64,000 bases of DNA, from contig OX337240.1 in assembly GCA_946965045.2 (NCBI GenBank), positions 124,001-188,000 of the forward strand, read 5' to 3'. Source of the DNA: Epithemia pelagica (taxonomy: Eukaryota; Protista; Bacillariophyta). Of the stretch, positions 5,636 through 27,686 are shown piece after piece (position 1 is the first letter of the stretch; each line of letters starts with the position of its first letter). The position numbers and the translations under genes are program-made. The notes beneath the pieces are model-generated. The model searched no databases, was not told the DNA's origin, and saw nothing but the letters and a program-made list of their open reading frames with translations.

Positions 5636-6103
5636 TCAAGACTGATGTAACGACAATGCGTTTGAGGGTTTGACATTATCCTCACGGTCCTCCGCTTGCC
5701 GCTCGGTCGACTCATTTGGCTCCTTTGTTCGACCAGCCGCAGTTGCTGCGACAATACCTGCAATCACAGCCATTGCCCCTGCCCAGAAACCAGTCACAAA
5801 GGTTCCCCTGGCATCCACCAAACTTTGAAGTACATGGGGCCATCCAGGTTCGACATAGACATTGCCCATGGATGGATGAGGACACAAGACTCCGGCCACA
5901 ATGCCACTGGCTCCAAATCCTGCTGCTGTGACAATGACACATGGAACCAAGACACACGCACCGGCAACCACAGCTACCGTTCCCACCTTTTTCATCCATT
6001 CCTTTTTGTCATGATGATCTTTGGGTTCGACTTGCGTTTTTTCAGTTTTGTTCATGGTCTTGCCACAAATGGAACCTGCCATTGTTTTCTCCGTCATGAT
6101 CAT
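5636..6103 (-). CDS. ISG12/IFI27 (Ifi-6-16)-like protein, copy A, degenerate core
   Basis: AAGFGASGIVAG...LQSLVDARGTF. Middle of the motif is scrambled; first Cys of CPIC and the C-terminal CPHC are lost. Confidence 0.65.
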   Translation of the reverse strand: MIMTEKTMAGSICGKTMNKTEKTQVEPKDHHDKKEWMKKVGTVAVVAGACVLVPCVIVTAAGFGASGIVAGVLCPHPSMGNVYVEPGWPHVLQSLVDARGTFVTGFWAGAMAVIAGIVAATAAGRTKEPNESTERQAEDREDNVKPSNALSLHQS

Positions 6104-6815
6104 AATATGTCTTGGGGATGGTGGTAGCGAAATGATAAGAGATACTGCGATGCACAGGGAGCAACGAGTCCCCAAAAAACACTACTACCCGTCACGAGCC
6201 GTTATCGCAACACCAATAACACCAGCAACCTCAACGGTCCGACTACATCATGAACCAGGACCTCAACACAAAGACGGATGTATGTGAGAAGCGGGACCTC
6301 AAATTGTCTCAATCGTTGGGTCGGGGCGATAGAGCTGAAGTCCCGTTTCCAAGACCGATCAGGGATCCAGACGCGACGGAGAAGCGACTTTTATGCGGTG
6401 GTTTGTTTTTGCATTTGGATGGTTTGCCTTGCTCCATGATAATGAACACGAGGAGTCCCGGTCAAGAGGAAAAACCACATGTCGTCGATTTTGGCAGCAT
6501 CTCTCGAGGTGTTACTGGTGTTCAGCACCTGCCCAGCGGTGCATCGGCTTTGCCATTCACAATACCACAGTCTGGCCGCACGCAATCACCAGCAGCTTAT
6601 CGTCTTATTCCACTCTGCTACTTGCAAACATTATGGAGAACACGCCAGACAACATTTCGAAACAATGTCAACCACTAATACAGTGTATGTGTGTGTGGAG
6701 ATGGACGAAACCGGGTCCAACGTGTAGCATCCACGACAACGCCATCAACCCCTACCACTGCACGACAAAAGAAACTGTAACCACAATAGCGGAAGAAGAT
6801 CGGACTACTTCCTAT

Positions 6816-7408
6816 CTACATGGAGTATACTCCCAAAATACGATTTTTTTCTTGGAATGTTCTCTTTTGCTGGGATCGTTTCGACGCCGTCGAGGCACCA
6901 CTAGTTGTCACAGTCGCATGACAATGGGGACAAGTGTACGTGACGATTTCCGGCTCTGACTCCTCCGTCTCCTCTTCCTTCGACGTTTCCTGTTCGTCGT
7001 CGTTTGGACTACCAGCCTTGGCGGCCGCGGTCGCACCTGCGGCAACGGCCGCACCTCCTCCCCACATGCCCGTCACAAAGGTTCCGGTGGCACCTAGACT
7101 TTGCAGACCGGCAAAGGCAGATCCCGCAGCCACATTCCCAATCGATGCTTGCCAGGCGCCGCCGAACCAGCAATGATCCCACCGGCTCCAAATCCTGCTG
7201 CGGCGGCAATGGCACACGGAACCAATACAATCCCACCGACAACTGCAGCTGCCGTTCCCACCTTTTTCATCAATTCCTTGTCATCCTTCTTTTGCTTGTC
7301 GTCTTCATTCTTGTTCTTTGGAGTCTTGGTTTCTTCTGATTTTCCTTGGTCAAGAGTCTTGTTCATGGTTTTGCCACAAATGGGACATGTCATCCTAGTG
7401 GCCGTCAT
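6816..7408 (-). pseudogene. ISG12/IFI27-like protein, copy B, one frameshift near 7165
   Basis: MTCPICGK...AAAGFGAGGIIAGSAA in one frame; WQASIGNVAAGSAFAGLQSLGATGTF...TYTCPHCH in the next. Confidence 0.8.
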
Positions 7409-8307
7409 TTGGGATCTTTACAGTTTTTGGTTGGCGATGGTAACAACGATTCAAGTGTTCAAGCAAACGGATTGGAAAACAATGAGAGACGAGAGGGACA
7501 CCCACAGCTTGGAGTTTCCGAAGCAAAAACTCACAATGGCACGACACAACGAGCGCCGCCAACCCAGCAGTAACAACAATTAAGGAAGAAAGCGAGGACA
7601 AAAACTCTCTCTTGTTGTTTGAAGAAAAGGGTGACGCACGATGGTCGTTCTGCAGAATTTACCAATCAAACTTCAAGATGTGTACATGGAGAAGAAAGGG
7701 TTCCTCACCACGAATCATAACAACGGTTCAGACAACACGTTTCCAAAAAATTAAAGCATCGTCGTTTGTCGTTCACGGGGATGCTTTTTTCGTGCAGGTC
7801 TGGCTTTTGCGTTCACTGTCTGTCTCTACAAAAGAGAGAGAGGACGGAACAAACGCCGGCTCGAATCCAAAGGAATGCACAAACGTGTGGGCAAACCTGT
7901 GGTCCTGGATCCAAACAAATTCATTCCCCGGAACAATAATTGTAGAAAAGTGTGTCGGTGTAGATAGGGGAGTTCGTGCGGGTACCTCCACACGAGCCAA
8001 TCAGGGATGAAACAAATTATACTTGAAGGTTCTCGTTTCGACGATCAAGGCAACCTTTACCAATATTTCGTGGTACATCGATACAGGACGTGTCGCGATG
8101 GTACGTTACACTCCTACAACGGTCGAGCTTTTCTAATAGCAAGCATGTTTGTTTGGTTTCTCTGTGGTTCCTGTCTCCATCAGTCTATCTCATTATTTCG
8201 TATAACAGGGGAGACGGAGTGATAATGGTAGAAGCCACACGATAGCGAAGCGCGACCTCAAATCGTCTCATTCTCATTTGAAATATTAGTATGGATAGTT
8301 CTTATTA

Positions 8308-8395
8308 GATCGCATGACAGGGGACAAGTGTACGTGAAGATTTCGGGCTCGGAATCCTCCGTCTCCTGCTTCTTCGGCGTTTCCTTTTCGTCGTT
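8308..8395 (-). pseudogene. 3' fragment of a further ISG12-like copy
   Basis: DEKETPKKQETEDSEPEIFTYTCP, homologous to the tails of copies B and C, with shared flanking sequence. Confidence 0.65.
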
Positions 8396-8477
8396 TACCA
8401 AATGGAGGAAGAAGATCGGACTACCTCTCTGAGTGCACTACCATCAAATGGCGCGATTCTTCTTGAATTGTTCTCTA

Positions 8478-9101
8478 CTACTGAGATCGGTTCGACGCTG
8501 CTACTGAACCACCACCCGTCGTCACAGTCGCATGACAATGGGGACAAGTGTACGTGGTGAAGATTTCAGACTCGAACTCGTTTCTCTGCTGCTCCTCTTG
8601 CGATTGGTCTTTTTCTTCTATGCCGTTTCGACTACCAGCCACGGCAGTGGCTGCGCCCGCGGCGACGCTGGCTCCACCTCCCCACATGCCCGTCACAAAG
8701 GTTCCGGTGGCACCCATACTTTGGAGACTGGCAAAGGTCGATCCAGCAGCCATATTCCCAATCGATGCTTGCCACGCGGCTGCCGCCGAATTAGCCATGA
8801 TACCACTGGCTCCAAATCCTGCGGCTGAGGCAGCGACACAGGGAACAACGACACAAGCACCGGGAATTAAAGCTGCCCGTCCCACCGTTTTCATCCATTC
8901 CTTATCATCCTTCTTGTCGTCGTCGTCGTCTCCATTCTTATCTTGGGTGTCGGGATCTTGAGAGTCCTCCTTCTTCTCCTTCTTTGGATTCGTGGTATCG
9001 AATTCTTGTGTTTCTCGCGTTTTGTCTTGATGGGCAATCTTGTTCATGGGCTTGCCACAGATGGGACATGTCATCCTTCTACTACAAGTGGTGGTCGTCA
9101 T
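8478..9101 (-). CDS. ISG12/IFI27-like protein, copy C, intact (207 aa)
   Basis: MTCPICGK; GFGASGIMANSAAAAWQASIGNMAAGSTFASLQSMGATG (ISG12 motif); TYTCPHCH. Confidence 0.8.
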   Translation of the reverse strand: MTTTTCSRRMTCPICGKPMNKIAHQDKTRETQEFDTTNPKKEKKEDSQDPDTQDKNGDDDDDKKDDKEWMKTVGRAALIPGACVVVPCVAASAAGFGASGIMANSAAAAWQASIGNMAAGSTFASLQSMGATGTFVTGMWGGGASVAAGAATAVAGSRNGIEEKDQSQEEQQRNEFESEIFTTYTCPHCHATVTTGGGSVAASNRSQ

Positions 9102-9886
9102 GGATTGGGACTTTGTATTAGTCGTTTGTCCTTTCTTATATATTTGTTTTGTTTGGTGATGGTAACGACAAGAACAACAACAACGACCCAAGTGAGTGGT
9201 GGTGGTGAAGCAAATGGGGACGATTGTATACAATTTATGCGTGGAGGTTTCCTTTTTGCTTCGCGACAAGGATCCAGGCAACCTCCATAGTGTTTGTGCT
9301 ACCCAGATACAGGACACACGTCTCGCTGGGTACAATCGTCGACACTACACCAGCACCAGGGTCGAATCAAGGTCGAGCTTTTCTAGTGTGTGTTTGGGTT
9401 CTGGTTTTTTGTTTTTTGTTTTTGGTCCCCATCCGTCCTTCTCGTCATTTGTTCGTACAACACAGGAGAGGGAGTCCTAATCATGGTCGTAGTAACCTTA
9501 TAGTAGCAGCCACACGATAGATAGCGAAGCGGGACCTCAAATCGTCTACCTATAGTCCCGCATCCGCTCCTCGGAAATAAAAGCGACCTATAAGCGACGT
9601 TTCTGCTGTTGCTTTCTGTATCCCTACCCAACGCGCGGCGATGAGTCAGTCCCCACCGAAACCAGCAGACCATGATGTCGTCGTCCATCCCCTTTCCGCG
9701 ATAGCCACCATGATTACTGCTTGATTCGTTGGTGTCGACTCATTCCAAACGAACACAAGATTGACCAAACAGAGAGAGAAAAAGAGAGAGGGAGCGAGAG
9801 AAAGGTTATACGCTATACACACACTTTGGATCCGACCCATTCTCGTGCCGAGTTCGAAACAAAGAACAAGCAAAGCACAACGCATC

Positions 9887-12667
9887 ATGCATCTATGGTC
9901 CTTTGTTGTCGCCCCTTCGGTCTGGTCCGTTTTGTTTGCCAGTAACCACAACCGGCCACACACACGAGTACAACAACAACAACAACAACAACACTCAACG
10001 GTGCGGCGACTTTTCTGGACGACCACTCCTCCTGCGGTTCGTCGTACCACATTCGTGCTGGCATCTCCCGAAGAACCACCAGCGGAACCACCAAGCCGCA
10101 GCCGCACCACAGTGTTGCTCGATTCCAACGCTACCGTCGCCAATGGCGATACCACCACAACCACAACGACCAAAGCGACAAGCAGCAGCAGCAGCAGCAA
10201 TGTCTCATCATCGTCATCTTCTCAATCATCCGTGTCCGAGTCTACTACGATGGAACCAGCAACCGTGTCGGACCACTCTTTTATCGGCAACAACCTGGAC
10301 GAAACCAGTAACAAAGTCAACGACAATGACGAGATGGACGATTCTCCCACCAATACATCGCCGTACAATTTGAGTGATTGGTTGAATCAAATCTATGTCG
10401 ATTTGGAACAACCGGGCCTGTACAATCGCTACGTGACACCCTCGTTGCGATTTAGTGTGGTGACACCGCCGACTCGGAATGGCACCAGTACCTGGATGGA
10501 TCCCCATTCCTATTACCAGGACGACAAGGACACCACTGCCAACACGGAAAAACCCTTGGCCGTCTTTCTTCCCGGGTTGGATGGCTATGGCTTGTCGGCG
10601 GCCCGGCATCAATACGACGATTTGGCCCGGACCTTTGAGTGTTGGCGCCTGGTCGTCTTGCCCGAGGACCGGACACCCTTTGGCGAATTGGTGAATCACA
10701 TTTGCGACTTTGTCGTGGACTTGGCCAGTCCATCCAGTACAACCACGAACGCCAAGAACCATATTCGACCCGTGACGTTGATTGGCGAAAGTTGTGGCGG
10801 TCTCGTGGCAGCCGCCGTGGCCCTCCAATTGGAACAACGATATGGTGGTTCGAGTAGTACAAGTACTAGTGACGACCAAGACAAGGAACCACAACCCAGA
10901 CGCAAGACTAATCAGAAGAAGCAGAAGAATCCCTACTTGCAAGGATTGGTCTTGGTCAACCCGGCCACGTCGTTTGATCAAACCAATTGGGATGCCTTGG
11001 TGCCTCTTCTCACTGCCTTGCCATCGTCCTCCAGTCAAGACAACAACAACAACAACCAAAACAATTTGACACCCTACGGCGTGGTGGGAAGTTTGATTTT
11101 GGCCGCCTTGATTCCCGATTCCGAACAACGCCAACAAATTTTGAGTGCCATTACCTCCTTACCGACTTTTCCGCCTCGCAATTTGCAAGATTTACAAGAC
11201 AATTGGGGAGCCATGCAAGCGAGTTTTCAAATTACCGAAGAGCGATTGCCGGCCGACGTGTTGCAGTTTCGCGTGTCGGAATGGGTCGATGTCGGCGATG
11301 CCATTGTGCGGCCCCGATGGTCCCTCTTGCGTCCTCTTCCCACCTTGCTCGTCGTGGGCGAACAAGATGCTCTCTTGCCATCGGCCCAAGAAGCCACGCG
11401 ACTCGCCTCGGCCGAGTACCTTCCCCACGCCGAAACCCTCAAAGTGCCGAATCGAGGACACTTTGTCTTGGATAATGCCGTGAATTTGACCGAAGCCATT
11501 TTGTATTCCCAAATTGATCCCCTGGACTGGAAAGGAGAGGGTACCATTACCACCACTTCCTCCAAGACAACCAAGAAAAAGAAGCGATACGATCCCATTG
11601 TGGATTGGAAACGACCATCGTCCGAAGCAATTGAGACCTATGTGCAACAACAAGTGCGACCGTTGCAACGAGCCTTTAGTCCCGTCTTTTTTAGTACCGA
11701 CGCCAAGGGCAAACGATGGAGAGGATTGTCCAAATTGCCTCAGATGCACTTTGCACAAAATGGCCAAGCCGGTAGTAGTAGTACTACTACGGCCAATCGC
11801 CCGCTCTTGTTGGTGGGCAATCATCAACTCTTGGCCGTGGATTTGGGTTTGCTGTTGACGGAATTGTACCAACAACAAGGCTGGCTTCCTCGCGGATTGG
11901 CCCATCCCGTGTCCTTTACTCCCACCTCGAATGAATTTGCGGCCGAACTCTTGGGTCGCACTCCCGGATTGACGGGTCCGAATCGCAATGCCGGACCAAC
12001 TGCGGCCTTTCAAACCTTTGGCGCGGTCCAAGTATCGCCTCGGAATTATTATCGACTCATGCAAACGGGACAACCTACCATGTTGTTTCCCGGTGGTGCG
12101 CGGGAAGCCTTGACGGGTGGCCGATCGGATTATCCCTTGTTTTGGCCCGACAAGACGGACTTTGTGCGAACCGCTGTCAAATTCAACGCCACGATCGTTC
12201 CCTTTAGTGCCGTGGGCATGGCGGAAAGTGCCCAACTCGTCTTGACCTACGAGCAATTGCAACGAGTTCCCTTCTTGGCGAACGCCTTGGCCAATGCCAC
12301 GACCTCACCCACGGACAACAAGGACGACGAGACGGGTTCTGGTACGAGTGCCAGTCGTCGCCGCCGAATGTCGGCTCGAATGGATGCAACGAACGAAACG
12401 GATTTGCAAGCCGATTTGGTCTTGCCCACCCTACCGGCCCGGAATTACTTTTTGTTTGGTCCAGCCATGGATACCAGTGCCATTGATCACAAGGATTTGA
12501 ATGCCTGTCAAACACTCTATGACCAGTTGCAGGAACAAGTACGCACGGGACTGGATGACTTGTTGGAGGCTCGTAAAGACGATCCCTTTGCCAATACACC
12601 GCGTCGTGTCTTGTACGAACAAGTCTGGGGGAAACAGGCACCCACTTTTTCCGTGGACAAACTATAG
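9887..12667 (+). CDS. Phytyl ester synthase / ELT-family acyltransferase (alpha-beta hydrolase + DAGAT domain), about 926 aa
   Basis: FLPGLDG, LIGESCGG, LVLVNPATSF, LLLVGNHQ, RGLAHP, FGAVQVSPRN, LFPGGAREAL. Uninterrupted ORF; first ATG at 9887. Confidence 0.9.
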   Translation: MHLWSFVVAPSVWSVLFASNHNRPHTRVQQQQQQQHSTVRRLFWTTTPPAVRRTTFVLASPEEPPAEPPSRSRTTVLLDSNATVANGDTTTTTTTKATSSSSSSNVSSSSSSQSSVSESTTMEPATVSDHSFIGNNLDETSNKVNDNDEMDDSPTNTSPYNLSDWLNQIYVDLEQPGLYNRYVTPSLRFSVVTPPTRNGTSTWMDPHSYYQDDKDTTANTEKPLAVFLPGLDGYGLSAARHQYDDLARTFECWRLVVLPEDRTPFGELVNHICDFVVDLASPSSTTTNAKNHIRPVTLIGESCGGLVAAAVALQLEQRYGGSSSTSTSDDQDKEPQPRRKTNQKKQKNPYLQGLVLVNPATSFDQTNWDALVPLLTALPSSSSQDNNNNNQNNLTPYGVVGSLILAALIPDSEQRQQILSAITSLPTFPPRNLQDLQDNWGAMQASFQITEERLPADVLQFRVSEWVDVGDAIVRPRWSLLRPLPTLLVVGEQDALLPSAQEATRLASAEYLPHAETLKVPNRGHFVLDNAVNLTEAILYSQIDPLDWKGEGTITTTSSKTTKKKKRYDPIVDWKRPSSEAIETYVQQQVRPLQRAFSPVFFSTDAKGKRWRGLSKLPQMHFAQNGQAGSSSTTTANRPLLLVGNHQLLAVDLGLLLTELYQQQGWLPRGLAHPVSFTPTSNEFAAELLGRTPGLTGPNRNAGPTAAFQTFGAVQVSPRNYYRLMQTGQPTMLFPGGAREALTGGRSDYPLFWPDKTDFVRTAVKFNATIVPFSAVGMAESAQLVLTYEQLQRVPFLANALANATTSPTDNKDDETGSGTSASRRRRMSARMDATNETDLQADLVLPTLPARNYFLFGPAMDTSAIDHKDLNACQTLYDQLQEQVRTGLDDLLEARKDDPFANTPRRVLYEQVWGKQAPTFSVDKL

Positions 12668-12910
12668 AGCAATCGAATTCAGTAGTCCATCACGAGCGGC
12701 TGCTATTCTCGCCCACAAATAGAATGTCATTACAGAGCATAGCATCACTAAACCACTCATCGTGCAACACCCACAAGTTCCACCTTCTAGTTAGAAAGAA
12801 CAGAGAAGACAGACAAGATGGTTCTTCAATTTAGGATAACTTTTATGGCTCTATTTGCATTCAAGAAATGGTTCTTTTTTGAAGGTGCACATGGAAGCAA
12901 TCACCAAGTT

Positions 12911-13465
12911 TCACGTCAGGACTCTTTTACAGTACGGACAACTATAGGACAAGATTCCTTCGTCCTCTTGCTCTTTTGTTTTGCTTGGTGGTGTGTCTTG
13001 AGTGCGGCTGGTATCACTATTTGTACCACTCATGGCTGTGGCGGCTCCGCCCGACAACAAGGCCACGGCCCCTCCGTACATGCCCGACACAAAGGTGCCG
13101 CTGGCTCCCAAGCTTTGCAGAGTGGCAAACCAAGACCCGGCGGCGACTGCACCACCTGCCGCTTGTGAGGCAGCCGCCGCAGAACCGGCGAGAATTCCAC
13201 CGACACCAAATCCTGCCATGGCTGCCGCAGCGCAGGGTACAAAGACCAACGCTCCTAGACCCATGGATACCTTACCAAGCTTGCTCATCGAAAAGTAGCT
13301 TTGTTCACAGGATTTCTCATATGTATCCTGCCGGTGTCCTTCTCCACAAAAGAAACAATAACCGTAGGGCGACGGTGATGGCTTTTGCTCACATTTCTGG
13401 GAGGAGAAGAAGTAGGGCCACCATGATGACTTTGGTTTGGGTTTTTCAGACCAGAAAAAGGACAT
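12911..13465 (-). CDS. ISG12/IFI27-like protein, copy D, intact (184 aa)
   Basis: YCFFCG; GFGVGGILAGSAAAASQAAGGAVAAGSWFATLQSLGASG; YSCPYCK. Confidence 0.82.
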   Translation of the reverse strand: MSFFWSEKPKPKSSWWPYFFSSQKCEQKPSPSPYGYCFFCGEGHRQDTYEKSCEQSYFSMSKLGKVSMGLGALVFVPCAAAAMAGFGVGGILAGSAAAASQAAGGAVAAGSWFATLQSLGASGTFVSGMYGGAVALLSGGAATAMSGTNSDTSRTQDTPPSKTKEQEDEGILSYSCPYCKRVLT

Positions 13466-14033
13466 GTCTATGAACGCCAACAGCGTGATGGTTCAATCCG
13501 TCGTTGTGCTTCGATTTGAGATTTTGTGAAGGCGAAGTTTTGGCCGGGGGGATGCATGTTCTTCAAGTTTCTCCGAGCCCAATTCTGTGCACGTCTGCGC
13601 GCAAGGCGAACTTCCATCCACGATCCGTTCACCCAAGTCCACTTTCTGTATTCTCGTTATCAAGAGAACTCCCGGCAAAAACACTCTCGTTGTCCTCTCA
13701 TTCTCATTCTAATCCATGACATGCTTCTTCTAATCTTGTTTCACGCGATCTTCTTTTGGTGTTTTGTGTTTGTTGCTCAAGCACCCACTAGCCTGTGCGA
13801 CCAAGAATGTTTTGCTGCGACTGCACGAAAGTTTTTCTCTCTCTATGTTACTGAATCCATCTCGGGAACAAAGTAACAGACCATGGTCGACCACGCTCGG
13901 TACACATAGAACACGAACAGGGATAGCAGTGTAGTTTCTCCGAGTCGTGATGCAGACGTGACTACAACTCATCCTAGCAAAGAAGGTCACGTACGAGAAC
14001 ACAATACTCTTGGCACCGCGTGAGTTTCGAATC

Positions 14034-14585
14034 ATGGTCCTGTCTCAACGCAATCTCGACAAGGTCAGTCCGCCCGATACGAAGAACGTGGTTTGTGGAA
14101 AGCACCCATCAACGGTAGCCGAAGACGACAACGGCGGTCAAGCAGTATTGGATCAGACGAATAGCTCCATTCTCAAAGAGAGGGAGTACGCGGACCGTTG
14201 GACCTACCGAAGCTACATGAAACTCATTGGCAATGTCACGATTGGTGTCGGAGTGACAGCCTTGCTGCTTCCCTCTATCACAGCTTCCTTGGCCGGTTTT
14301 GGTTCGGGTGGAATTGTCGTTGGATCCAAGGCCGCGGCGTGGCAATCGGCGATTGGGGGTGTGGTGGCAGGCTCTTTGTTTGCCAAGCTTCAAGGTATGG
14401 GAGCCAGTGGGTTGTTTCTGTCTGGTATCTGGAAAGGAGCCGCCACGGTGGCGGGAGGAGCCGTCACTGCCGCAGCATCCAGTACAAGTTCTCGTGGAGA
14501 GGAGGAAGCGAGCAGCTTGGAAGCCTCCACAGAACATTTCGAAGAGAAAATGCAGGACATTGTCAAAGAAAAGAAGTCGTCATAA
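14034..14585 (+). CDS. ISG12/IFI27-like protein, copy E, intact (183 aa), divergent from copy D
   Basis: LAGFGSGGIVVGSKAAAWQSAIGGVVAGSLFAKLQGMGASG; no CxxC pair. Confidence 0.8.
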   Translation: MVLSQRNLDKVSPPDTKNVVCGKHPSTVAEDDNGGQAVLDQTNSSILKEREYADRWTYRSYMKLIGNVTIGVGVTALLLPSITASLAGFGSGGIVVGSKAAAWQSAIGGVVAGSLFAKLQGMGASGLFLSGIWKGAATVAGGAVTAAASSTSSRGEEEASSLEASTEHFEEKMQDIVKEKKSS

Positions 14586-16913
14586 GATCACACTCTTGTT
14601 AGCTTCAAACGCATCGACTATATCCGATGGAAACATCCTTGTACTTGCGTCAATCGCTTCATTGTTATGAAGAATGTCTCATCCATTGTCGAATCTGAAA
14701 GCTCCAATTGCCAGTCACGACGGACAAGAGGACGCCGTTGGAACCCGATTGCTTTTTTCCTTCCAAAGGCTTGTGTTAGTGTGTGTTTGTTGTGTTCCTA
14801 TGTTCGTCCCCTCTCCGAATAAGATGTAGTATCAGGGTTAGTTTCTTGCTTTTCTTCTATCGTTACAACTCTATCGTTTATAGTGACAGACAGTTGCAAT
14901 AACGACAAGAGAGTAGCCAGAGCGCTTGCTTGTAGCTACCTTGCGGAATTTTAAGATGTAGTGTATCGACGATTTGGTTTGAATGATAGTCGTTCGTGCA
15001 CTATACTGTAAGACTTGTTCTGCTCAGCTCTTCTCTCTTCCGATTCAGTGCTCTCGCCATAACAAATCTGAAATCGTCTACTAATATAGCAATCATGTTA
15101 ATTCGAAATGTGCAGTTTGCTGGAGAGATGGTATTATTGAGAGGATCCGATCGGAATCGAATCGGCGTGCCATGTCGTACTTCGGCATAATTTGTTACCG
15201 ATCCATATGATGTTTCCCACTAACGCCAAACGCAACGCAACGCAACAGCACTCTAGCTTGATGATTGGAGACCCAAAGTTCTGGAATCTGTGAAATACGA
15301 ACCCCGCAACTGGTCTAATAGCTAGCTGGCGTTTTTGTCGTCGTCGTGGATCTTCTTCTCGTTCATTTCCTCCTCCCAGCACACTGTTCTTTTTTCACTG
15401 AAGAATCTCTTCTTGGTCGTTTTCTTTTTCTTTGTCGGTTTCCAGTTGTTGAATCCAAGAGAGGATAGAGGGACACGACACACCTCTCAAAGAAAGATCC
15501 AATAGATTTTCGCCGTCGTCGTCGTCGAATCTCAGCAATTCCGAATAGGAGTCCAACCGGCGTTCCACTTCCACATCGTTTTTATGCCCCTCTAGGTAGC
15601 TGGATGGTAGTAGAGGTAGCAGAGTTAATAGTTACATTGAAAGGGGGGTCGGCCTTCTGGGGGATCGACGCAGCAAAACCCAACACATCCTCCGCGGGAG
15701 TCTTCCTAACCAGTTTATTATAATTGACAACAAGAAACAGACTGAAACGCGAAAGGAGTCTTCGCCATCACAGATCACACACCAAGGAGGGGGGGATCTT
15801 GTCAAAAATAATAGCGATCAGACACGACACATCAATGCGACCATGAAATCGTCGGTCGTTGCATGTTTCCTACTGGCCGCCAGTCTGCTGGCTCCACACT
15901 CTTGTCTTTCCGAAGCGTTACCTGGTAGCAGATTCAATGTGTTGGTAAGGAAAGATGGTCATTTGTGGGTGTGTTTTGTTGTCGCCTGACGACAGAAGAT
16001 TCAATAATCTGAGAATGGTTCCTCTGTTGGTGTCGGTGTTGTCTCAACTTGTACTGGTTTGGTTTCTCCAGCGTCCACAATCGTTATACAAGGCCGGTGG
16101 ATACGATCATACAGATGCCATGTTCGGCAACCCACCCTACGGTGAATCGATTCAACAACGATTGTATTATGCTAACAATAATACAATGTGCTATTTCGTT
16201 GCGGAGCAGCTCGATACCACCCATTGGCTTGTGCCCTTTATCATGATGATAGACCGAGGTGATTGTTCCTTTGTGCAAAAAGTGCGCAATGGACAAAAGG
16301 CCGGTGCGTCAGCCGTCTTAATTGCCGACGACATTTGTCTGTGTGATCGAGAGGTGTGTCAAGACGAAGAGACCAATGGTCAGGATGTATATTGTCAATC
16401 TGAAGTGTAGGTCTTTGCGAACTGCACTTCTTTCGCACATTGTACTTGAAGCTTCAGCCTGGAGTCCAAATTCTTCTTTTCTTGGCGTTTCACTATTTTT
16501 AAGGCCTATGATGGCAGACGACGGCACCGGATCTGATGTCTCGATTCCCTCCTTTCTCTTGTTGAAGGAAGATGCGGACCCGATCAGAAATGCTTTACTG
16601 AACAAAGAGCATGTCGTAGTCGAAATGTCCTTCTCGGTTCCAGCACCGGATAATCGTGTGGAGTACGAGTTGTGGACAAATCCGGCAGATAGTCATACAA
16701 GAGAATTGCATGAAGATTTCCATAGTGTTGTTCAAGCCTTGCAAGATCATGCTTCCTTCACGCCGCACATGTACATTGAGGATGGTGAACATGCTGGATG
16801 TCATGGTGACGATGGAACAAACTTTTGTGGGGATTTGTGTATCAACCATGGTCGATATTGTTCCGTTGAATTGGATCTCAACAGTGGTGCCACTGGGCAA
16901 GAAGTAGTATTAA

Positions 16914-17087
16914 TACTTCCCGGTGTCGAGTCCTTTCAAGGAGGGACCGCCCGGCGCGGAGGGTAGAATGACGAGGAGGGCAATGGTCGAGGAGGGCGCA
17001 CGCCCGACAAGACAATTGCCCGTCGAGTCATTCTCCCGACAAGCCGGGCGCGCCCGACGCGAGAGGACGGCCAGACACAGGGAAGTA
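16914..17087. mobile_element. Short GC-rich MITE-like insert with TA-bounded inverted termini
   Basis: TACTTCCCGGTGTC (16914-16927) versus GACACAGGGAAGTA (17074-17087): 13/14 inverted match. Confidence 0.6.
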
Positions 17088-17480
17088 GTAAACTTACTCC
17101 CTATCAAGCTGTGTAGGTAGTGAGAAATTCCTGCAATAGCAGCATTCTGTGTATATTATTTTCAGCCAAAACGCTCAATCCCACCTCTTTGGCACTGCCC
17201 GCTCTCCAAAAAACGGGCTCGCGCTTTTAAGTATCTGCCTCACCCCAAAAACCTATTTCTCATGCTGACATTCTCTAGGACGAAAGGTATTTAAATATAA
17301 TGTCACAATTTCTGTCCAAATTCGTATCCGGTTTCCACGCTCGGAACCACAACATCCATTCCATCCAAGCATGCTAATCGTTACCTCCGATGGTGAAACA
17401 AGAAATGACAAACCCAACAATCCAACCACGGCTCATCTGCCCATTAATATCGGAGAGAAAGAACTCACGGGTAACCAACG

Positions 17481-19103
17481 ATGTCAGACCGTCCACCTGA
17501 ATATGAGTGGACTCTCGCCCTTCATCAGACTCCGCACTACGACGTCAACATCCAGGACAACCTGCGCATCGGATCGTTCGTGTACCTTTCTCACAAGACG
17601 AAAGGATCAAGGACACACTACAATGTTGCTCGACTCGAAGAACGCCAACGTGATGAAGATGATGAAGCAATGGAATCAATTGTTGTCCGATGCCGTTTAT
17701 TCTACCCCTTGTTTGAATCACCACCGAACCAGACCAACCCAACCCCACCGTCGCACTCCTTTCGTCCAATTACCCATGGCCCTGGTAGCGAAAACACTGA
17801 ACTATACGAATCAGCAGATTTATGCTGGCTCAAGTTCATGAGCAAGACATCAGGACCTCAGTGCATCCATCCTTCTTTTGTTTTCACTCCGAAGGAACTG
17901 GAACACCCCAAGAATGCTTGGGCTGCAAGTATTTTCAACGTCTACATTGTTCGATATTGGGAGAACAAGGACTGTGACAAACGAGAACTGGTTCCCCTTC
18001 CTGATGATGCGCATATGGGTTTTATCAACGACCACCCAAAGTTCAAACCCAAACCCAATACATTTAAGCCACAGCGTTGCCTACATGAAGCCATTTGGAA
18101 TGGCCTCTATACAATCAGAAAGAGCATTCACAAATTACTCAACAAACGCTCAGGACAGGGATCTGACAGAGAAGTGGTTTCCTTGAACATTGGTTGCGTT
18201 GCAATGGAGAGTATTCAATTCATCTCTCAAGTCGCCAACACATTGATTACCCTGAATACTCACCCCATTTCACTGTCTGAGTCCTTCTTTCATTTGGACT
18301 CTTCCCTATCACGATCAAAGGTACGAATTCTAATACACGCTCATGCATGTGAACCACTTCATTCCTCATAACAACATTCACACCATTCCATTGTCTAAAT
18401 CCTCCTTCCATTGCAACAGGTGAAAATTTCTTTCCATGGCGGTGTTCTTCGTTTCAAGACCCAATCCGAATTGAATGTCCTCCGCATGATATTGGGACCC
18501 AGTGCGACGTATGGATTGTCCGAACGACGTCCTAAACTCGACGATGGCAGGACAGGACTGGTGCTACGACGCGAGCAAAACCTCACAGTTGTTGCTGGTG
18601 CTCAAGATTCCAACCCCCACGAATCCGACGAAACATCGGAACCTCCATTCAAGCGCCGGATTGTGGACCAACGCGTCGATTTCATATTTTCACCTTATAA
18701 TGTTCGTCTTACCATTTCGTACGAGCGTTATCAATATTCCGTGAGCCGTGATGGCAATCTCAAACACCTCCCTCCATGCCCCAATTTGGAAAAGATACTC
18801 CAAGGACAGTCTCAAAACGATTTGGCAAGTGAAAGTGACTTCTCCCTGTCATCAATCGACACGAACTTAAAGCCACCTTCGTACACAAAGGCTGTGTCAA
18901 AGATCCACATTGGCGATCAGTACATGTACAAGGGAGAAAGTGTCATGGAAGTCTCTTCCATCACCCGCCAGGAAACTGATGTCAAATTTGACTGTCGATG
19001 TGTTGGTGGAGTGGGGTTCAATCGTAAATCCCCAAAAGAGTCACTGGTTATCCAACGAACTGACGCTGAAGAGTTACTCAAAGACATCCTTTCGTTTGCT
19101 TAA
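17481..19103 (+). CDS. Transposon partner gene, about 507 aa, N-terminal BAH-like domain; intron 18321-18419
   Basis: LRIGSFVYL...YNVARLEE...VRCRLFYP...ELYES...FVF resembles the BAH core. A phase-0 GT-AG intron joins the two ORFs in frame. Confidence 0.62.
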
Positions 19104-19142
19104 CATTCCATTATCAGTAGTTTACATTCGATACTTATCATC

Positions 19143-22100
19143 CTATGTTTCACACTCATCTTCTGCAACTAGTTCGTCTTCATCATCATCATTCATAGTA
19201 CCCAAAGACGCGTCGTCGTCCTCCTCGTCATCGTCACTGTCATCGTAGTAGTCCTCGTCATCGTTATCGTCACTATCCTCATCTTCCTCAGGGTCTACAA
19301 CAAGTGATGTTCCATGTGTCATCTGGTCTACATCGTCAATTGGTGTCCATGTACCAGGTTCAAAAAAATCCCAGTCATCGAGATCCATAATATCCGCCAA
19401 TTCTTCTACCGATTGTTCGTCCGATTTGTTTTCCTCTCTTGGCTGTTCCGCACCTCTATTGCTAGCTCCATTGTCCGTTGGTGACTGTCCAGCAGTAACA
19501 GTGACTTCCATTGATTGTCCGGCATCTCCATTCTCATTCGTCGACTGCTCAGCACCTCCATTCTCATTCGTCGACTGCTCAGCACCTCCATTCTCATTCG
19601 TCGACTGCTCAGCACCTCCATTCTCATTTGTCGACTGCTCAGCACCTCCACTCTCATCTCTTGACTGCCCGGCTCCTCCACTTTCATTACCTGTCTGTTG
19701 ACCACCTCCATTGTCTTGTGTACCCGGAATTCTGCGACAAAATTCCATTGTACCCTTATTCTTTGCAACCCAGGTTTTCCTTGCCAGCGCATTGTCCTCG
19801 CTGCAATTTGCATTACCTTCTGTTATATCACTGTATTCGTATCGACACATGAAAACCATGCGTCGTTGCAACCATCTCGCCATTGGTTCTAGTCTGGACC
19901 TCCTACCCTTTCCCCTATTTGTACTACCACCCCTTTGTGTTCTGGAAAAATAGAACGTCTTAAATAAACTATTGAATGCTGTAACAGTGTAGGTGAGTAG
20001 CCATTTTCAACAAACAAGAGAACCTCTTTCGCTTTCGCAGGTTACTACTCACCTTCCCACCCCTGTTGAGCGTGGGATGACAGGTTGCGCCAGTGGATCA
20101 GGTATTCCATTACGTGACCACTACCTATCAAGTGTGCGTAGTTGGTTATCCCATTCTCACCACACAAATCCACCCAAGTTGCAAAGAACTCATCCGCCTT
20201 GCGCTGATAGTCAAAAATCTCACTGTCTGTCATGCTGGTTTTCTTGTTAAGTCGTTCCATGGAAATGACGTAGTCGGCTACACACTGCTTCCACTTGACT
20301 CGTTTCTCTGGGTTTGCGATACATATATCTACCAGTTCATCAAACTTGGGTAACATTCTTCGGATGCGGACGTTGTCCATAGTGATAGTTCCAAGTTTAC
20401 GCTTCTTCTTCTCATACGGTGCTTTCCACTGCGTCGGCATATCACTCGTTCCCAGTATGGACTGGTTCATACATTTTTGGACTCGCTTGATGAAGTGGTT
20501 ACATCGCTTTATTTCTGAATTGTCATATTCTTCAGGCATCCAATCGAACTCTTTGACCTTTGCACTTGCCAGACCGTGTCGCAAACACATGGTAAGAATC
20601 TTGATTCCCATGCGATTCTCCATATGGAGAATGCATGGGACCGTGTCCATCATATAGACAATTGCGGTAGCAGTCTTGGACTGCTTATAATCATCTAACA
20701 CCTTCTTCGCTTGGTAGTAAATCCACTCTTTGACATGGTGGGCCTTGAGTCGTCGTTGTCGTTGCTCTAGTGTACCATGCACATCTAGTTCTCTAACCAC
20801 CAGATCATTGGTTATGAACCTCGCATATTCCAGACGCTTGGCAACATCGGCTTTGCCTAGATCAAAATGGATGGACTTGATGTTCTCCTTCTGAACTTTG
20901 GTTGGGTCCATCCTGGGGTCCTCTTGCATAATCAACTCGGAATCACCCCATATATCAGTTAGACTCTCGTAGATGCTAGGCATCTCCTTGACGAAGTGGT
21001 CCACTTCCTTTTGTAGACTGTCTACATGAGCCCTTGTACACATCTTGTGATGTCTACATACCCAGTTTGTTTTCTTGGAATGTCCTAGTTGCGAGCACAG
21101 GCTGCAGTCTTCGACACGTCCTGTGGGGAGATGGAGTTCTCCACTTCGTACAGTACATTTCGAACAAGGGAAGTTAACTTGTTGAGCGGCCCCACCACGC
21201 CCAAGTAGCTTCCACTCGCAACTCATATCGCAATTAGTGCATATTTTGAGCGGCCATACTCCGAATTTCGTGGGAAGTACTTTTACGGCAGCTTCACGGA
21301 TCTCTTCGATCATGTTCCGAAAGATCGATCGCACTAAGCCCTTGCTCTCTGGACGACAAACACACAACCGGAAAACAACTGTTGCGTGATTGGGCAAGAG
21401 GGTTGGACATGTCGTTGAACTTCAGCCCTCCCAGTGTATGGCTTAAGTTTTTCGTGAAAAGAGCGCCGTCCAAACTCTGTGCCAACTGGATGGGCCGCCA
21501 ACAAGCGTCTCCGTACAGACAATTGCCTGCCACTAATATTCCTGCCATAACATCGGCTGCCCGGAAGGCAAATCCTTCCGACCCATCGGTCTTGTGCCGG
21601 AAAAGTCGGTAGGGGCAGAGAAGACTCCCAAACTTCTCGACTTCTTGGGCTACATCCTGGATACAAGAACTACTTGGGATAAGTGTGTGTGTATTAGCAA
21701 CTCCATTGCTTTCCACTTGTCGTAGGACTTCAATGCCGCCAAGGTTTAGGACGCCACCTGCGAGATCCATTTTCCGTAGAATGTTAAACGGTGTGAAGAC
21801 GTAATCGCGTACATATTTACGAAATACACCATATGCATTCTCGAACATGAGCCCATTGTGTATGGATTTGTCAAGGCACAGTTGTGCCACGTCTCGGAAG
21901 AATTCTCCTGCTGCTCTACTCGTGTCATCCATCCTACTGGTCCTTGATACGAGGATTTCTCGGATATGTGACACCAGTTTTTCACGGTCCTTGATGTCGT
22001 AGCAAGAGGCGGGGAGATCAATCTCTTTGCTTGTCGCTTTTGTTTCCGCGTCTTTATCCCTCCAATACCGAAGGTCATCTGATCTATTCTTCAGCTTTCT

Positions 22101-23331
22101 TCTACAATCGGTCAAATCGTCGGTTACTTTCTTCAGGGACTTGCGATAGTCAGACACAGCTTGATGTGCTTGTAGCAGATCCTGTTCCAAACAATGGATC
22201 TGATTGTGGAGACGTGTGATTTCTTCGTTGTCTTCTTGTGTCGAATCCATGTTGGCAGATTCGTCAGCATTATCTAGAGTTTCATTACTACTAAGGTACG
22301 TCTTATTTCTTGTCTCTTCAGTTGTTGATGAGTCGCCTTGCTCATCTCTGGACTGCTTACTCTCTGCATTTTCGAATGGGGGCAGGTCATCTAATTCTTC
22401 ATTGTCGACATCAAACGACTCGGCTTCATCGACTGCATGGTCTCGAGAATCATGAGCATAAAAGCTGTGATGGCTGAGGGGGTCCTGGAAAAGAGGTAAG
22501 TTTAACAGAAACTGTGGAGTTTCTTTCTTGTTTGCAGCGTCGTTGTATTCGTCTTCATCAATCTCACTAATGAGGTCGTCATCGTCTTGAGGAACATTCC
22601 CTTGGGTTGGGTTCTTAGTTTCATCCTTGCCTTGTGGATGCTGGTACAGAATGCTTTCGAGAGTGGATGATGGAGGTGGAGGTATGATCCTTGATCGTTT
22701 CCTCCTCTGTCGTTTCTTGCGTTTGCGAGTCGTTCTCATGGAATTTGTCGCCATTGCATGGTCGACAAAACAAATCAATTGGCGGTGGTTTTGGAGAGTT
22801 CTTCTTCTTTGGGTCGATGTATGTGGGATGCCAGAAATTTGTGTGCTTGGATCTACAGGTGTATCGACCGCCTATTGCCTTGCGGTTTATCTTGTGAGAA
22901 GGACGGAAACCAGACTCGTCGTCTGCCTTTTTGCATTGGCTACAGAAGGTGTATCCTGGGTAGCGTTCCTCGCGGTCTCTGCCATAAACAGAGCAGGGGA
23001 CATGGTCTTCGTCCATAAAATCAAGAACAATCTGGGCAATCCGCTTTCTCTCAACAGAGTTTTTTTCACATGTGATATTCGATTCTTTGCGTCGGGTCCT
23101 TGTCTGTTTGTTGGGAGATGGAAGGAGCTTCTGGGCTTCCTCCGCTTCGCGTTTTGCCAGTTCGGCGAGAATTTCTTCTTCCGTCTTGAACCTGCTATCC
23201 TTGGCACCTCCATCGTTGGAATCTGATGCCGTCTCTTTTTCTCGAAGGCGACGAGACTTCCGAGAACCTTCAGTGGAAGCGGTGGGTTGCCTCTTCTTTG
23301 CGTAGTTCTTCGGGGGCTTCTGTTTTGGCAT
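19143..23331 (-). pseudogene. RAG1/Transib/Chapaev-like DDE transposase; frameshifts near 22690 and 21360; intron 19979-20052
   Basis: QSLDG (D), TNCDMS..WKLLG (D), PCSKC, PCILH, ITNYAHLIGSGH, and QQGWE|AFNSLFKTFYFSRTQRGG after splicing. Acidic tail. Confidence 0.8.
19501..19710. repeat. 30-bp coding minisatellite (GAEQSTNENG), about 7 units, 4 near-identical
   Basis: TTCTCATTCGTCGACTGCTCAGCACCTCCA at 19531, 19561, 19591 and 19621, with degenerate flanking units. Confidence 0.92.
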
Positions 23332-25653
23332 TCAACGAGGATAGGATAAGTAATAATACAAGTATTACTCGACTCAAATGGCGCTGTCCTCATTGTTTCA
23401 TCGTCGACTTCTCTCGGTTGGAGTTCGTACTTCTGATGACTCAACTACGATTGAAAGGCGATTAGGTTGGTGTATGTTATTCATTGATGTATATAAATTA
23501 ATGCTGTAGAGGTGTGCACGTGTGAGTGGGTGTGCTGTGCTCGCATTTTTTTCCCAAAATTTCGTTTGTGTGTGAAAGGTGCCAATTGGACCCGTTGTAT
23601 CTCGACGAATATTACCTACTTTTGTCATCGGACAAAAACGTAACATTGTGTTGTATTGATAGTGTCATGGACCGTTGGCCGATGACAAAGTTAGTGGGTA
23701 TTGCATTGGCAGTTTAGAACCAAAATCGGATGGTCGTTGGGAATGAAATTTTGGTGGTTATATTTAACAAAGGATGAGCCACTGTTTGGGTCATAGTTGG
23801 TGGGGGGTTTCTGATACGACATCTTGGTGGATCTTGGACGTTGGGGTCTCGCCATGCGCGCACAATATGCACAGAATGCTGCTATTGTGGAAGCCATGTC
23901 ACAAAGTGTCACATAAGTGTCACACACGAGAGGGAAACCGCGCGACTCGCACGAAACTACTTCCCGGTCGTACAAAAAATTCCTACTGTAGTATAAAAAT
24001 GTGAGACGAACTACCTACACAGTCTGGTATGGAGTTAGTGAACGAAGCATTGCGTCGAATTTGTGTCTGGAATTTGTATGGCAAGGACAATGGAATTGGA
24101 TTGCCTTGGTGGGAATATGTCAAGCACTTTACCGAACTCTGTGATAGTGAATCCGTTGCGTCTGGAGGCAAGGTCTTTAGCGATAAAGCCTGTGTGAAAC
24201 AGGCCATGGAATTAGCGGGAGTAGACAAGGATATGGTCGATGAGTGCATGGAAAAATCTGGTGGTACAACGGAGGATCAACCAAACCAACTTTTGGAGAA
24301 GGCATTGGCGGATCAACGGGCGTCGGATGTTGGTCATATTCCCCTTCTTGTTGTGAACCAAGCTGTCATCTGCGGTTCCTTGAATTTGGATACAACATTC
24401 AGGGCAATATGCACCGGCTTTGCAGCTGGATCAGTGCCACCAATTTGTCTCGAGTGTGCCACTTCTCAGGACAAGAAGACATGCGTAGAACACAGCTCGG
24501 GTGCCTACCAAACTAACGGGTTACTCGGTATCAATACCCGAAATACCGGTGTGGCCATATGTATCGTGGTCGTGGTGATGGTCCTTCTGATGGTTTTCTT
24601 TGCTTTGGACAGGCGCCAAAAGGCTTTTATGCGACAGCAAAGTCAAAGTGATGAGGATGACCTCGATGACAGAGCTGTAACCTTAGAATTGTCCTAGACA
24701 ACGAGAGAAATAAGGGACATGTCAATGGAGAGAGCCACACACAATGCCGATTATACGCAAAAGACACACAGCAATCAGAACTATGTGTGAAAAGAAGAGC
24801 AGTCTGGATGGCACGATGCCCGCCCTGTCCCCAGTGGCTGCTGCACTCGATCGCTCGTGTATTGCGTCCTTGCCTTTACTGGTACTCTTACTACTCCACA
24901 AACCAATCATGGCCCTTTGCTTTCGCAAGAATTCTAACCCATCTCTGTTCACCAGGATACACAACATGCACCCCACGACTCGTCCTAGTCTCTCTGTATA
25001 CCAACACACCCGGTAAAGATCGTCTGACGAAACACTGTCGTCTTATCGAAAGCACAAGAAGGTTATTCTCCATACAGAACAGGCCTGGACGACCATCCCT
25101 TGGACAGCACTCCGGCGACAACATATGAGAACATGGCAGAGCATGCTCGGCACACACGAATCACGAACAGAGGTGACAGTGGAGTTTGTTGGAGCCGTCG
25201 TGTAGACGTGAAGGCAAATCCCTATGGTAAACCTTCGTATGTTCCAGATTTTCTAACAAACACAATAATCTTGGCGACGTCAATGGTCCGGAGCCTGTCT
25301 CCACGCCATCTCGGCAAGGCCAGTCACCGACACAGAAAGATGGGGTTTGCTTTTCTTGTGGAAAACTGGAAAACACCTGGGCCAGTCGTAGACCAAAAAG
25401 AAGATGGCCCCCGAGAGGTCAATCATGTCAATATTCAATAGGGCTACCAGGTGCTTGGAACATGGGGGGATGATACTATGAATCCTCTATTATGCACGTC
25501 ATCAAACAACGGCTTCCAACTGACGTATTTCACCTAAATACGTCAGTACTTTCAAGCAGGTGGCATAGTGTGACCAGTGACCGGCCTTTCTATAATCTCT
25601 TTTATCCCCCTTTGACGCACGGAACTTTCGGTTCAAGCAACCCCCGAAGCCAC

Positions 25654-25929
25654 ATGAAACTCATTGGCAATGTCTCCATGTGTGTCGTAATGACAGCCTT
25701 GTTGCTTCCCTCTGTCACAGTATCCTTGGCCGGCTTTGGCTCGGGTGGAATTGTCGTTGGATCCAAGGTCACGATGTGGCAATTGGCGATTGGGGGTGTG
25801 GAAGCAGGATCCTTGTTCTGGAAAGGAGCAGTCACGGTGGCGGGAGCAGCCGCCTCGTGGAGAGGAAGCAAGCAGTTTGGAAGGCTCCAAAGAGCGTCTC
25901 GAAGGAAGTACAGGACATTTACAAAATAA
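25654..25929 (+). pseudogene. ISG12-like copy F, a decayed duplicate of copy E with an internal deletion
   Basis: Near-identical to 14216-14640 but lacking the AKLQGMGASGLFLSGI segment. 26228-26256 is identical to 14667-14695. Confidence 0.8.
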
Positions 25930-26276
25930 GAACTTCAAACACATCTACTATATCCGATGGAAACATGTTTGTAGTACTACTTTTCGGTGACCTGGAGTTA
26001 GACTGTAAAGCACTACGTGCGCCATAGCATTTCTTAGAAGAATCCGTACTCACACACCTCTTTTCTGGTGTACCAGTTCGTGGTCATCCCGCTTTCAAAC
26101 GAATTCGCCTGTCGTTTTGGTCTTGGAATTCTATGTATATTTCTCTCTCTTCTACTCTACTAGCTAGGAGTGGAAGCACTCGGGGACATCCTCTCTGCAA
26201 TTCTCGCTTCCTTGTTGCTTTGCTATGATGAAGAATGTCTCATCCATTGTCGAATCCCTCCTCTAGCCAAACAGTA

Positions 26277-26320
26277 GGTGGGTCGGTGGGTCGGTGGGTC
26301 GGTGGGTCGGTCGGTCGGTC
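26277..26320 (+). repeat. (GGTGGGTC)4(GGTC)3, a canonical G-quadruplex motif
   Basis: Four GGG tracts separated by TCGGT loops at 26280-26306. Confidence 0.8.
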
Positions 26321-27686
26321 TCGTAGGTACCCTCCGATTGCGGGGGTACCTCCCGTCTGCTGTCCATACGGTTATTGCCAAATTTTCCTAAAAAATGTAA
26401 AAATTACTTCTGTCAAATTTCCTTTGATTTAGCAAATTATTATAACGTCCAAGCCAACTGTAATAACTGGCTTGGCCATATTGTGTAGCCGCTTGCGCTC
26501 ATGCAAACCGTGATTGACGAGACATGTGCACAGAGAAATCTACGAGCCCATTTTGTACTCTATAGTCTATACTGTTTCAGAAGCGAGTACTCTTTACGCA
26601 GTAGTGGATCAAGCTTCACGGAATCATCACGCACACACACCAAACCATGAAATACACACACATCATGGATCATGGTGCAATGCACCTCTAGGAGTATCAA
26701 CTATCAACACAAGCTCCTGGCACTTTGTCTATGGGAAAGATAAAAAGAATAGTCCACTACTAGTTTAGGCTGCCTCCTTCCTGGGCTTATACACCCCATG
26801 ATGATGCTATCAAAACTTCGCCTCATCATTGCAGTGGTTGATTGTTCTTTGCAGTGGTTGATTGTCATGTTTCATGTTGTCATCCTTCCTTTGATGCATT
26901 CCGCCTTCACTTGTGATCTAGGTGGATGGTTTTGACCATAAAGTTGTCACTGTGGTCGTTCGTACGGCTGGATTGGTTTTTGGTGTGCTCATGGTCGTCT
27001 TTTGTGGTGTTGCTCGAAAAGTGAGACGATTCCTGGCCCTTTTGTGCCAGAAATACAAGGCGTGACCGGTGCGTCGATTTCGAACGATCGAAGGGAGGCT
27101 GGCGATATTACCCGGCTGGCGCTTTGGGAAAAAATACGGGACAATTTTTTTCCTTTCGGATGACGGACGAACAAAGGTACCCCCCCAAACGCACCCAAAG
27201 CTCCAAAACGCGATGAATTAAAACCCGAATGGGAATCCAATCGGCTTTCCATCGGCCGCGTGTGAGGCATCGGACAGACCGTTTTTTGGTCACCGTTGCT
27301 TAACAAGGAAGAGCCCGCGAGAATCCGAAATCCGAAAGATGCGAACCGTCCGTTGGCTGTCCATTCTATGATTCTTGTGTGCAATGGCCTTGTGTTGTTC
27401 GCCGTCTTCCATGACATCATGGAGGACCACTGACGGTTCTCTTCCAACATTATATTCTTATCATGATGGCGACTTCTTCTACCTACTATTAGGTAGTCCT
27501 ATCTTTATGGGATCACAGCCGCCTTTTTAGCGCTCGTTTTCTACTAATCTCACAATCTGTGCTTTGATCCAGGGACAGAGTGTTCTTGTTCTTGTTGTTG
27601 TTGTTGTCGTTGTTATTGTTGCGTCTTGTCAGAGAACCAGGCCAACTACAAACGAAAACCAACACCACCCAGAGACTCGCCAGAAG

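Follow-up and report, generated by a model that had tools for sequence, protein, structure and literature searches.

The ISG12 or Ifi-6-16 proteins (PF06140, alias FAM14; IFI6, IFI27, IFI27L1 and IFI27L2 in humans) are a medically prominent family that has no solved structure and the topology and mechanism of which are disputed. The family was reportedly defined by Parker and Porter in 2004, with members from unicellular eukaryotes to humans, and induction by interferon or viruses is a feature of some vertebrate members only, not of the family as a whole. Residence in ER (endoplasmic reticulum), mitochondrial or nuclear-envelope membranes, with consequences for apoptosis or for the membranes of viral replication, also counts among its traits. 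Animal relatives have been linked to antiviral action or apoptosis (PMC13705193), a member found in shrimp is antiviral (PMC9144789), and the domain has also been annotated in fungi by means of Pfam (PMC10051545). The animal proteins are described as acting at the ER or mitochondrial membrane, with effects on cell death or viral replication, a view that is itself debated (PMC13705193). We have analyzed a cluster of ISG12-like genes, six copies (A to F, in the order of their positions) and one fragment, located in a 64-kb window of contig OX337240.1 of the diatom Epithemia pelagica, i.e., the whole stretch of 64,000 nucleotides that was studied. It is probably an old, lineage-specific diatom ISG12 tandem cluster, partly decayed, that includes a subfamily with a split zinc clamp made of a cysteine pair (CxxC) at either end of the protein. 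The presence of the ISG12 family in a diatom is expected per se; what is less ordinary is this conserved split four-cysteine clamp. It is apparently undescribed, and a literature search for papers on diatom ISG12, IFI27 or 6-16, or on a zinc-ribbon-flanked ISG12, gave nothing relevant.

The diatom copies have in common with the PF06140 family a Gly/Ala-rich hydrophobic core of ~80 residues carrying the signature GFG...GS.AA...GS.FA..QS.GA.G. In both cases the proteins are small, the genes form tandem clusters (at 14q32 in humans) and there are members in organisms without interferon. However, the diatom proteins lack a signal peptide or presequence and contain long acidic linkers, and regulation by interferon cannot apply to them, diatoms having no interferon system. 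Terminal CxxC pairs are found in most of the diatom copies but not in the distant relatives P0001–P0005 nor, to our knowledge, in animal ISG12 members. Homologues from other diatoms had already been deposited, annotated merely as hypothetical or unnamed proteins: Epithemia clementina (KAL7559452.1), Cylindrotheca closterium (CAJ1962346.1) and Synedropsis sp. CCMP1620 (MMETSP). All three are likewise built as CxxC - ISG12 - CxxC and are placed phylogenetically within the clade of the window copies or next to it. An earlier note on this DNA had presented the family as a surprise in an organism without interferon, but these deposits, together with the members in fungi and shrimp, make it an ordinary finding.

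The other described system to which these proteins can be compared is LITAF, in which cysteine-containing hairpins flank a hydrophobic membrane anchor, zinc is bound and both termini face the cytosol (Ho et al., 2016, PMC5142333). The architecture of the diatom proteins is like that of the LITAF/SIMPLE-like zinc ribbon (PF10601), with a CxxC knuckle and its hairpin, a hydrophobic segment, and a second knuckle with its hairpin. In LITAF the two knuckles bind one zinc and have directly between them an anchor that consists of one helix of roughly 25 residues, while the diatom insert is a multi-helix ISG12 core of ~82–95 residues plus disordered linkers of ~20–130 residues. Membership of the LITAF family was tried and rejected. 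The zf-LITAF-like hidden Markov model (HMM; cut-off 23.8 bits) found no match among the window copies at E <= 1, and in the 32-member subfamily described below PF10601 matched a single member, at 18.4 bits and thus under the cut-off. LITAF is taken here as an analogue only.

Domain identity and condition of the copies

The loci were defined by a listing of open reading frames (ORFs) together with tblastn of each copy against the whole window. This way, six ISG12-like loci and one fragment were found, all inside positions 5636–25929, and tblastn with each of the copies detected no further locus elsewhere in the 64 kb. The minus strand carries A, B, the fragment, C and D, and the plus strand E and F. 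D and E are arranged head to head with their starts ~570 bp apart, and the spacer between them (13466–14033, to which no strand is assigned) is presumably a shared promoter region, judging from the coordinates. C, D and E, which have open frames and the complete motif, are the intact and presumably working copies, and A, B and F plus the fragment are decayed. The ORF listing, tblastn and alignments thus bear out what the earlier note had said about the number and condition of the loci and about their tandem and divergent arrangement. The one correction concerns the Gly/Ala-rich motif, which it had placed in the fragment as well as at the six loci: the alignment shows that the fragment (8321–8395) does not contain it.

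On sequence grounds the motif is the Ifi-6-16/ISG12 domain, and the identification made in the earlier note has held up in the HMM search. The gathering cut-off of PF06140 (Ifi-6-16) is 29.1 bits and in the protein search two copies exceeded it, E with 35.8 and C with 30.5 bits. D was borderline, with 27.5 bits as a protein and, in six-frame translation, 28.7 bits or 29.5 when its neighbours in frame were included. The two pieces of B and copy F matched, below the threshold, those parts of the model that they would be expected to match, and A had no PF06140 match in the HMM search; scores under the cut-off are what one expects of decayed copies. A six-frame PF06140 search of the whole genome agreed with the protein search. 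The intact copies reached HMM E-values of 7e-9 to 3e-6 and scored 129–179 bits with a profile of the subfamily, and are therefore not chance matches.

The relatives found in the databases point in the same direction. Few matches were obtained by word-index searching with C, E and a paralogue profile, and the diatom subfamily was obtained from an exhaustive profile search over 1.84 billion representatives, which retrieved 2549 relatives at E <= 1e-3 (299 at E <= 1e-10). PF06140 matched all 32 members of the subfamily, with a best E-value of 7.5e-13, and two unnamed metagenome relatives are labelled "Interferon-induced 6-16 family" in public databases. In a language-model search all the neighbours were Ifi-6-16 clusters, the commonest from Ascomycota and Chordata, so that fungal clusters are among them, although the scores were low (0.80). 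It could be argued that low-complexity, Gly/Ala-rich membrane segments resemble each other by chance and with no homology: the core is 52% Gly+Ala+Ser, single copies barely exceed the Pfam cut-off, and one sub-threshold archaeal match appeared in the control set. We find this hardly credible, since position-specific invariants (GF, G, S, AA, GS, FA, GA) align over all the copies and the distant relatives, and the language-model neighbours, low as their scores are, belong exclusively to this family. Chance similarity was rejected on these aligned invariants and on the PF06140 matches of the complete subfamily.

The intact proteins have 183–207 amino acids (aa), with an uncharged centre of ~80 residues rich in Gly, Ala and Ser and polar, acidic linkers on either side. 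Copy C (8478–9101, minus strand; 207 aa) is organized as an N-terminal CPxCG knuckle, an acidic linker, the ISG12 core, a second linker and a C-terminal CPxC. Its core is made of 82 consecutive uncharged residues, 52% of them Gly, Ala or Ser, and contains 25 small-xxx-small motifs. Copy D (12911–13465, minus strand; 184 aa) has its CxxC pairs at residues 37/40 (13346–13357) and 176/179 (12929–12940), both on the minus strand. Copy E (14034–14585, plus strand; 183 aa), the one with the top Pfam score, has been annotated as a protein (P0006), with a 95%-identical counterpart (P0007) in another assembly. It has lost three of the four clamp cysteines, retaining only the second of the N-terminal pair (...VCGK...), and is a derived member in which the clamp has been lost.

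The decayed copies are in different stages. Pseudogene B (6816–7408, minus strand) is split into two overlapping ORFs, 7094–7408 and 6816–7217. Its alignment with C revealed a 4-nt deletion near 7157, within ...GSAA/WQAS..., that shifts the frame. Both CxxC pairs are retained, and a public annotation includes the C-terminal piece as a protein of 105 aa (P0020). Copy A (5636–6175, minus strand; ORF listing and tblastn) is open in frame and degraded, with a probable start at 6103 or 6097. When aligned with C it shows a gap at the site of the deletion of B, followed by a second deletion, of 2 nt, that restores the frame; the gap common to A and B may be a lesion older than the duplication that separated them, or a coincidence of the alignment. 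The core of A is unrecognizable past GFGASGIVAG, the AAGS.FA part is wrecked, and three of the four flanking cysteines have been lost (the first N-terminal one and the entire C-terminal pair); with the subfamily profile the copy scores 126.8 bits. F (25492–25929, plus strand) is, by tblastn and alignment, a decayed duplicate of E, and the homology between them begins only at ~25639. In comparison with E, its core has a 48-nt in-frame deletion with its junction at ~25824, and then frame-breaking gaps that add up to 29 nt, and even so F has been called as a protein of 145 aa (P0008). Neither E nor this dead duplicate has the clamp. Finally, the orphan fragment (8321–8395, minus strand; ~75 nt), detected as part of repeat family D7 and by tblastn and alignment, retains of a lost copy nothing but the acidic tail and the region of the C-terminal CxxC, and 2 nt are deleted within that cysteine pair.

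Paired cysteines at both ends of the core

A profile built from 70 relatives located nine loci of the family in the genome (60.5 Mb in 23 contigs), all of them on contig 16. Besides the six of the window there is a sister cluster of three, G, H and I, at 361.5–364.2 kb, i.e., ~225 kb downstream. B, C, D and these three sister genes are members of a diatom subfamily in which the core is flanked on each side by a CxxC pair; most of their closest relatives share this arrangement. The N-terminal pair is usually CPxCG and begins within the first ten residues, therefore leaving no room for a signal peptide, and the second pair is located ~10–20 residues from the C-terminus. The four cysteines are unchanged throughout an alignment of 32 sequences of the subfamily, the mean column identity of which is only 17%, while the linkers vary freely from ~20 to ~130 residues. 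A fifth, nearly conserved cysteine is found in the first helix (a "PC" motif). Of 145 matches, 23 have a CxxC no more than 30 residues from each terminus, and so do 17 of the best 30, to be compared with a mean of 0.035 proteins in composition-preserving shuffles, and the N- and C-terminal pairs co-occur with an odds ratio of 15 (Fisher p = 1e-9). Many members of the subfamily also gave weak, sub-threshold matches to zinc-ribbon models of Pfam.

We modelled two proteins with AlphaFold2, copy C and a compact relative. In both models each of the knuckles is a small beta-hairpin with a predicted local distance difference test (pLDDT) score of 89–94, and the linkers are low-scoring and disordered. 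In C, the N-terminal pair (Cys12 and Cys15, 9057–9068, minus strand) has a pLDDT of ~90, and the C-terminal one (Cys186 and Cys189, 8535–8546, minus strand) of ~89 with hairpin strands at 182–185 and 192–195; both pairs occupy invariant columns. Four helices are predicted in C (67–93, 98–113, 120–131 and 134–160), of which the outer two are long and the inner two short. A sequence search of the PDB returned no relevant entry.

In the explanation that we favor, the two cysteine pairs would jointly bind one Zn2+ ion as a split zinc ribbon at the cytosolic face, and the site would tie both ends of a membrane hairpin together in the way described for LITAF. A joint site implies that the N- and C-termini are on the same side of the membrane, and if the termini are tied in this manner the core would make an even number of passes or be a monotopic hairpin. 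By analogy with IFI6 and IFI27, the helices rich in small residues might pack or oligomerize in the ER or mitochondrial membrane and alter its integrity or shape, and the thiol/zinc site may confer sensitivity to redox conditions or metals. The subfamily with the clamp would also be a tractable model, from outside the animals, in which to investigate the function of the core.

Several observations weigh against this explanation. The predicted template modelling score was 0.28 in both models, the membrane core was modelled at low to moderate confidence, and when the two models were searched with Foldseek and VIA-align, nothing beyond generic long helices or weak zinc-ribbon similarities was retrieved. 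Copy E, which has the top Pfam match and a conserved counterpart in a second assembly, functions, if at all, without the clamp. The sister gene G (contig 16, 361330–361962) is a 210-codon open frame with no in-frame ATG ahead of the core, which leaves its gene model uncertain; P0024 (243 aa), which adjoins G in the tree described below, suggests that the start is further upstream, possibly across an intron. In addition, the function is borrowed by analogy from animal proteins whose mechanism is disputed.

The terminal pairs could also serve separately and not as a joint zinc site, i.e., as redox-active dithiols, S-acylation sites or two independent metal- or protein-binding knuckles. The additional cysteine of the first helix would fit such a use, as would the length and disorder of the stretches that connect the knuckles to the core. 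However, we consider it improbable, because the two pairs have been gained or lost together, as measured by their co-occurrence, the order CPxCG, then beta-hairpin, is that of the classic zinc-ribbon knuckle, the models are confident at both ends simultaneously, and the weak zinc-ribbon matches are spread over many members.

Selection, age and possible roles of the cluster

A maximum likelihood tree was built on the core, with the two pieces of B joined by an X at the break. A single clade (support 80/90) held all nine loci of the genome, the proteins of Epithemia and Cylindrotheca, and three unnamed relatives. Within it there is a group made of A, B, C, E and F (81/77), and the pairs E+F and H+I were each recovered with 100/100. 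As expected of so short a domain, most of the deeper forks were not resolved. The nearest named relatives of the window proteins are from diatoms (E. clementina, Synedropsis sp. and C. closterium). A diatom origin, already proposed in the earlier note, is well supported by these relatives and by the silicon-transporter profile, which matched the genome 17 times, ten of them full length and the rest fragments, with a top score of 755 bits.

The ratios of nonsynonymous to synonymous substitution rates (dN/dS), calculated pairwise by the Nei-Gojobori method, were 0.17 for C-G, 0.17 for D-G, 0.30 for C-D and 0.38 for H-I, indicating purifying selection on the intact copies. The decayed copies drift towards neutrality, with values of 0.42–0.54 for B-C, 0.48 for A-C and 0.82 for E-F. 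At the coarse level of pairwise dN/dS, no sign of diversifying selection was found among the copies. The synonymous divergence (dS) was at least 0.27 in every pair, ranging from 0.27 to above 1, and therefore no duplication is recent. The birth-and-death evolution that had been claimed for this locus stands in so far as copies were duplicated and then decayed, but it has been slow.

A related observation concerns H (contig 16, 362357–363124) and its counterpart in another public assembly, P0019, which differ in several residues. The tail of P0019 is different from and shorter than that of H and has no C-terminal cysteine pair, as a one-base frameshift would give. From the sequences, P0019 may be a frameshifted, decaying allele of H.

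By analogy with the animal proteins, the cluster may have a role in defence or cell death; for diatom biology it is a candidate, and only a candidate, stress or cell-death component. The earlier note had gone further and taken the birth-and-death pattern to suggest an innate-defence or programmed-cell-death locus; in such a reading, the turnover would be driven by an arms race with viruses, aldehydes or other stress. The antiviral or apoptosis-linked relatives in animals and shrimp, the tandem expansion with several pseudogenes and the truncated allele of H that the other assembly appears to carry are all compatible with such a scenario. However, dN/dS between intact copies is that of purifying and not of diversifying selection, the duplications are old and the turnover not rapid, and tandem duplication followed by decay is common in non-essential genes of any function. 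Nor are there defence genes nearby, the neighbours being a hydrolase-acyltransferase and a vacuolar sorting receptor gene. The suggestion is thus not supported here, and a locus shaped by an arms race seems to us rather unlikely.

A less dramatic possibility is that these are constitutive proteins of an organelle membrane, for example a mitochondrial or ER component, the copy number of which drifts neutrally, leaving redundant duplicates as pseudogenes. The purifying selection on the intact copies suits it well, and so do the breadth of the family in eukaryotes without interferon (the fungal clusters and the 2549 relatives) and the fact that the genome has just nine loci confined to one chromosome. 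On the other hand, housekeeping genes seldom tolerate such a share of dead copies, and the strong differences among the linkers of the intact copies, along with the loss of the clamp in E, suggest relaxed or diversified roles. All considered, we take it as a possible but less likely alternative. More speculative is the idea that the cluster represents an undescribed ISG12 class of diatoms, or perhaps of protists more widely, in which the four-cysteine clamp is released by oxidation or loss of zinc and lets the protein pass into a membrane-permeabilizing state. The protein would then be a redox-triggered death or antiviral effector, with an ancient core ancestral to IFI6 and IFI27. If true, such a redox-released clamp would settle the disputed topology of the family, with both termini on one side, but we see it as a long shot. 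The old, partly decayed tandem cluster with its split zinc-clamp subfamily is still the explanation that we prefer.

Neighbouring genes and other features of the window

A 968-aa open frame located between C and D (9761–12667, plus strand) codes for an alpha/beta-hydrolase joined to an acyltransferase domain, the match of the latter being of 19.9 bits, under the Pfam cut-off of 23. This pairing recalls the plant fusions of the phytyl-ester-synthase type. Between E and F there is a vacuolar-sorting-receptor-like gene with a PA domain followed by the thioredoxin-like domain of these receptors (VSR_TRX). The gene is split in two parts on the plus strand, 15955–16966 and 24029–24697, with positions 1–91 of the VSR_TRX profile matched at 16322–16966 and positions 88–208 at 24029–24697, so that ~7 kb (~16970–24030) are inserted between the two halves of the domain. 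It is either a disrupted gene or one with a giant intron that contains a transposon.

Within the inserted stretch, an acidic open frame of 246 aa (19143–19883, minus strand) includes, at 19466–19705, at least six tandem repeats of 30 nt encoding a ...NENGGAEQST... decapeptide. Just downstream of F, at ~26270–26330, there is a microsatellite of the GGTGGGTC/GGTCGGTC type, and a 40-nt stretch beside it (26217–26256) recurs downstream of E, at 14656–14695.

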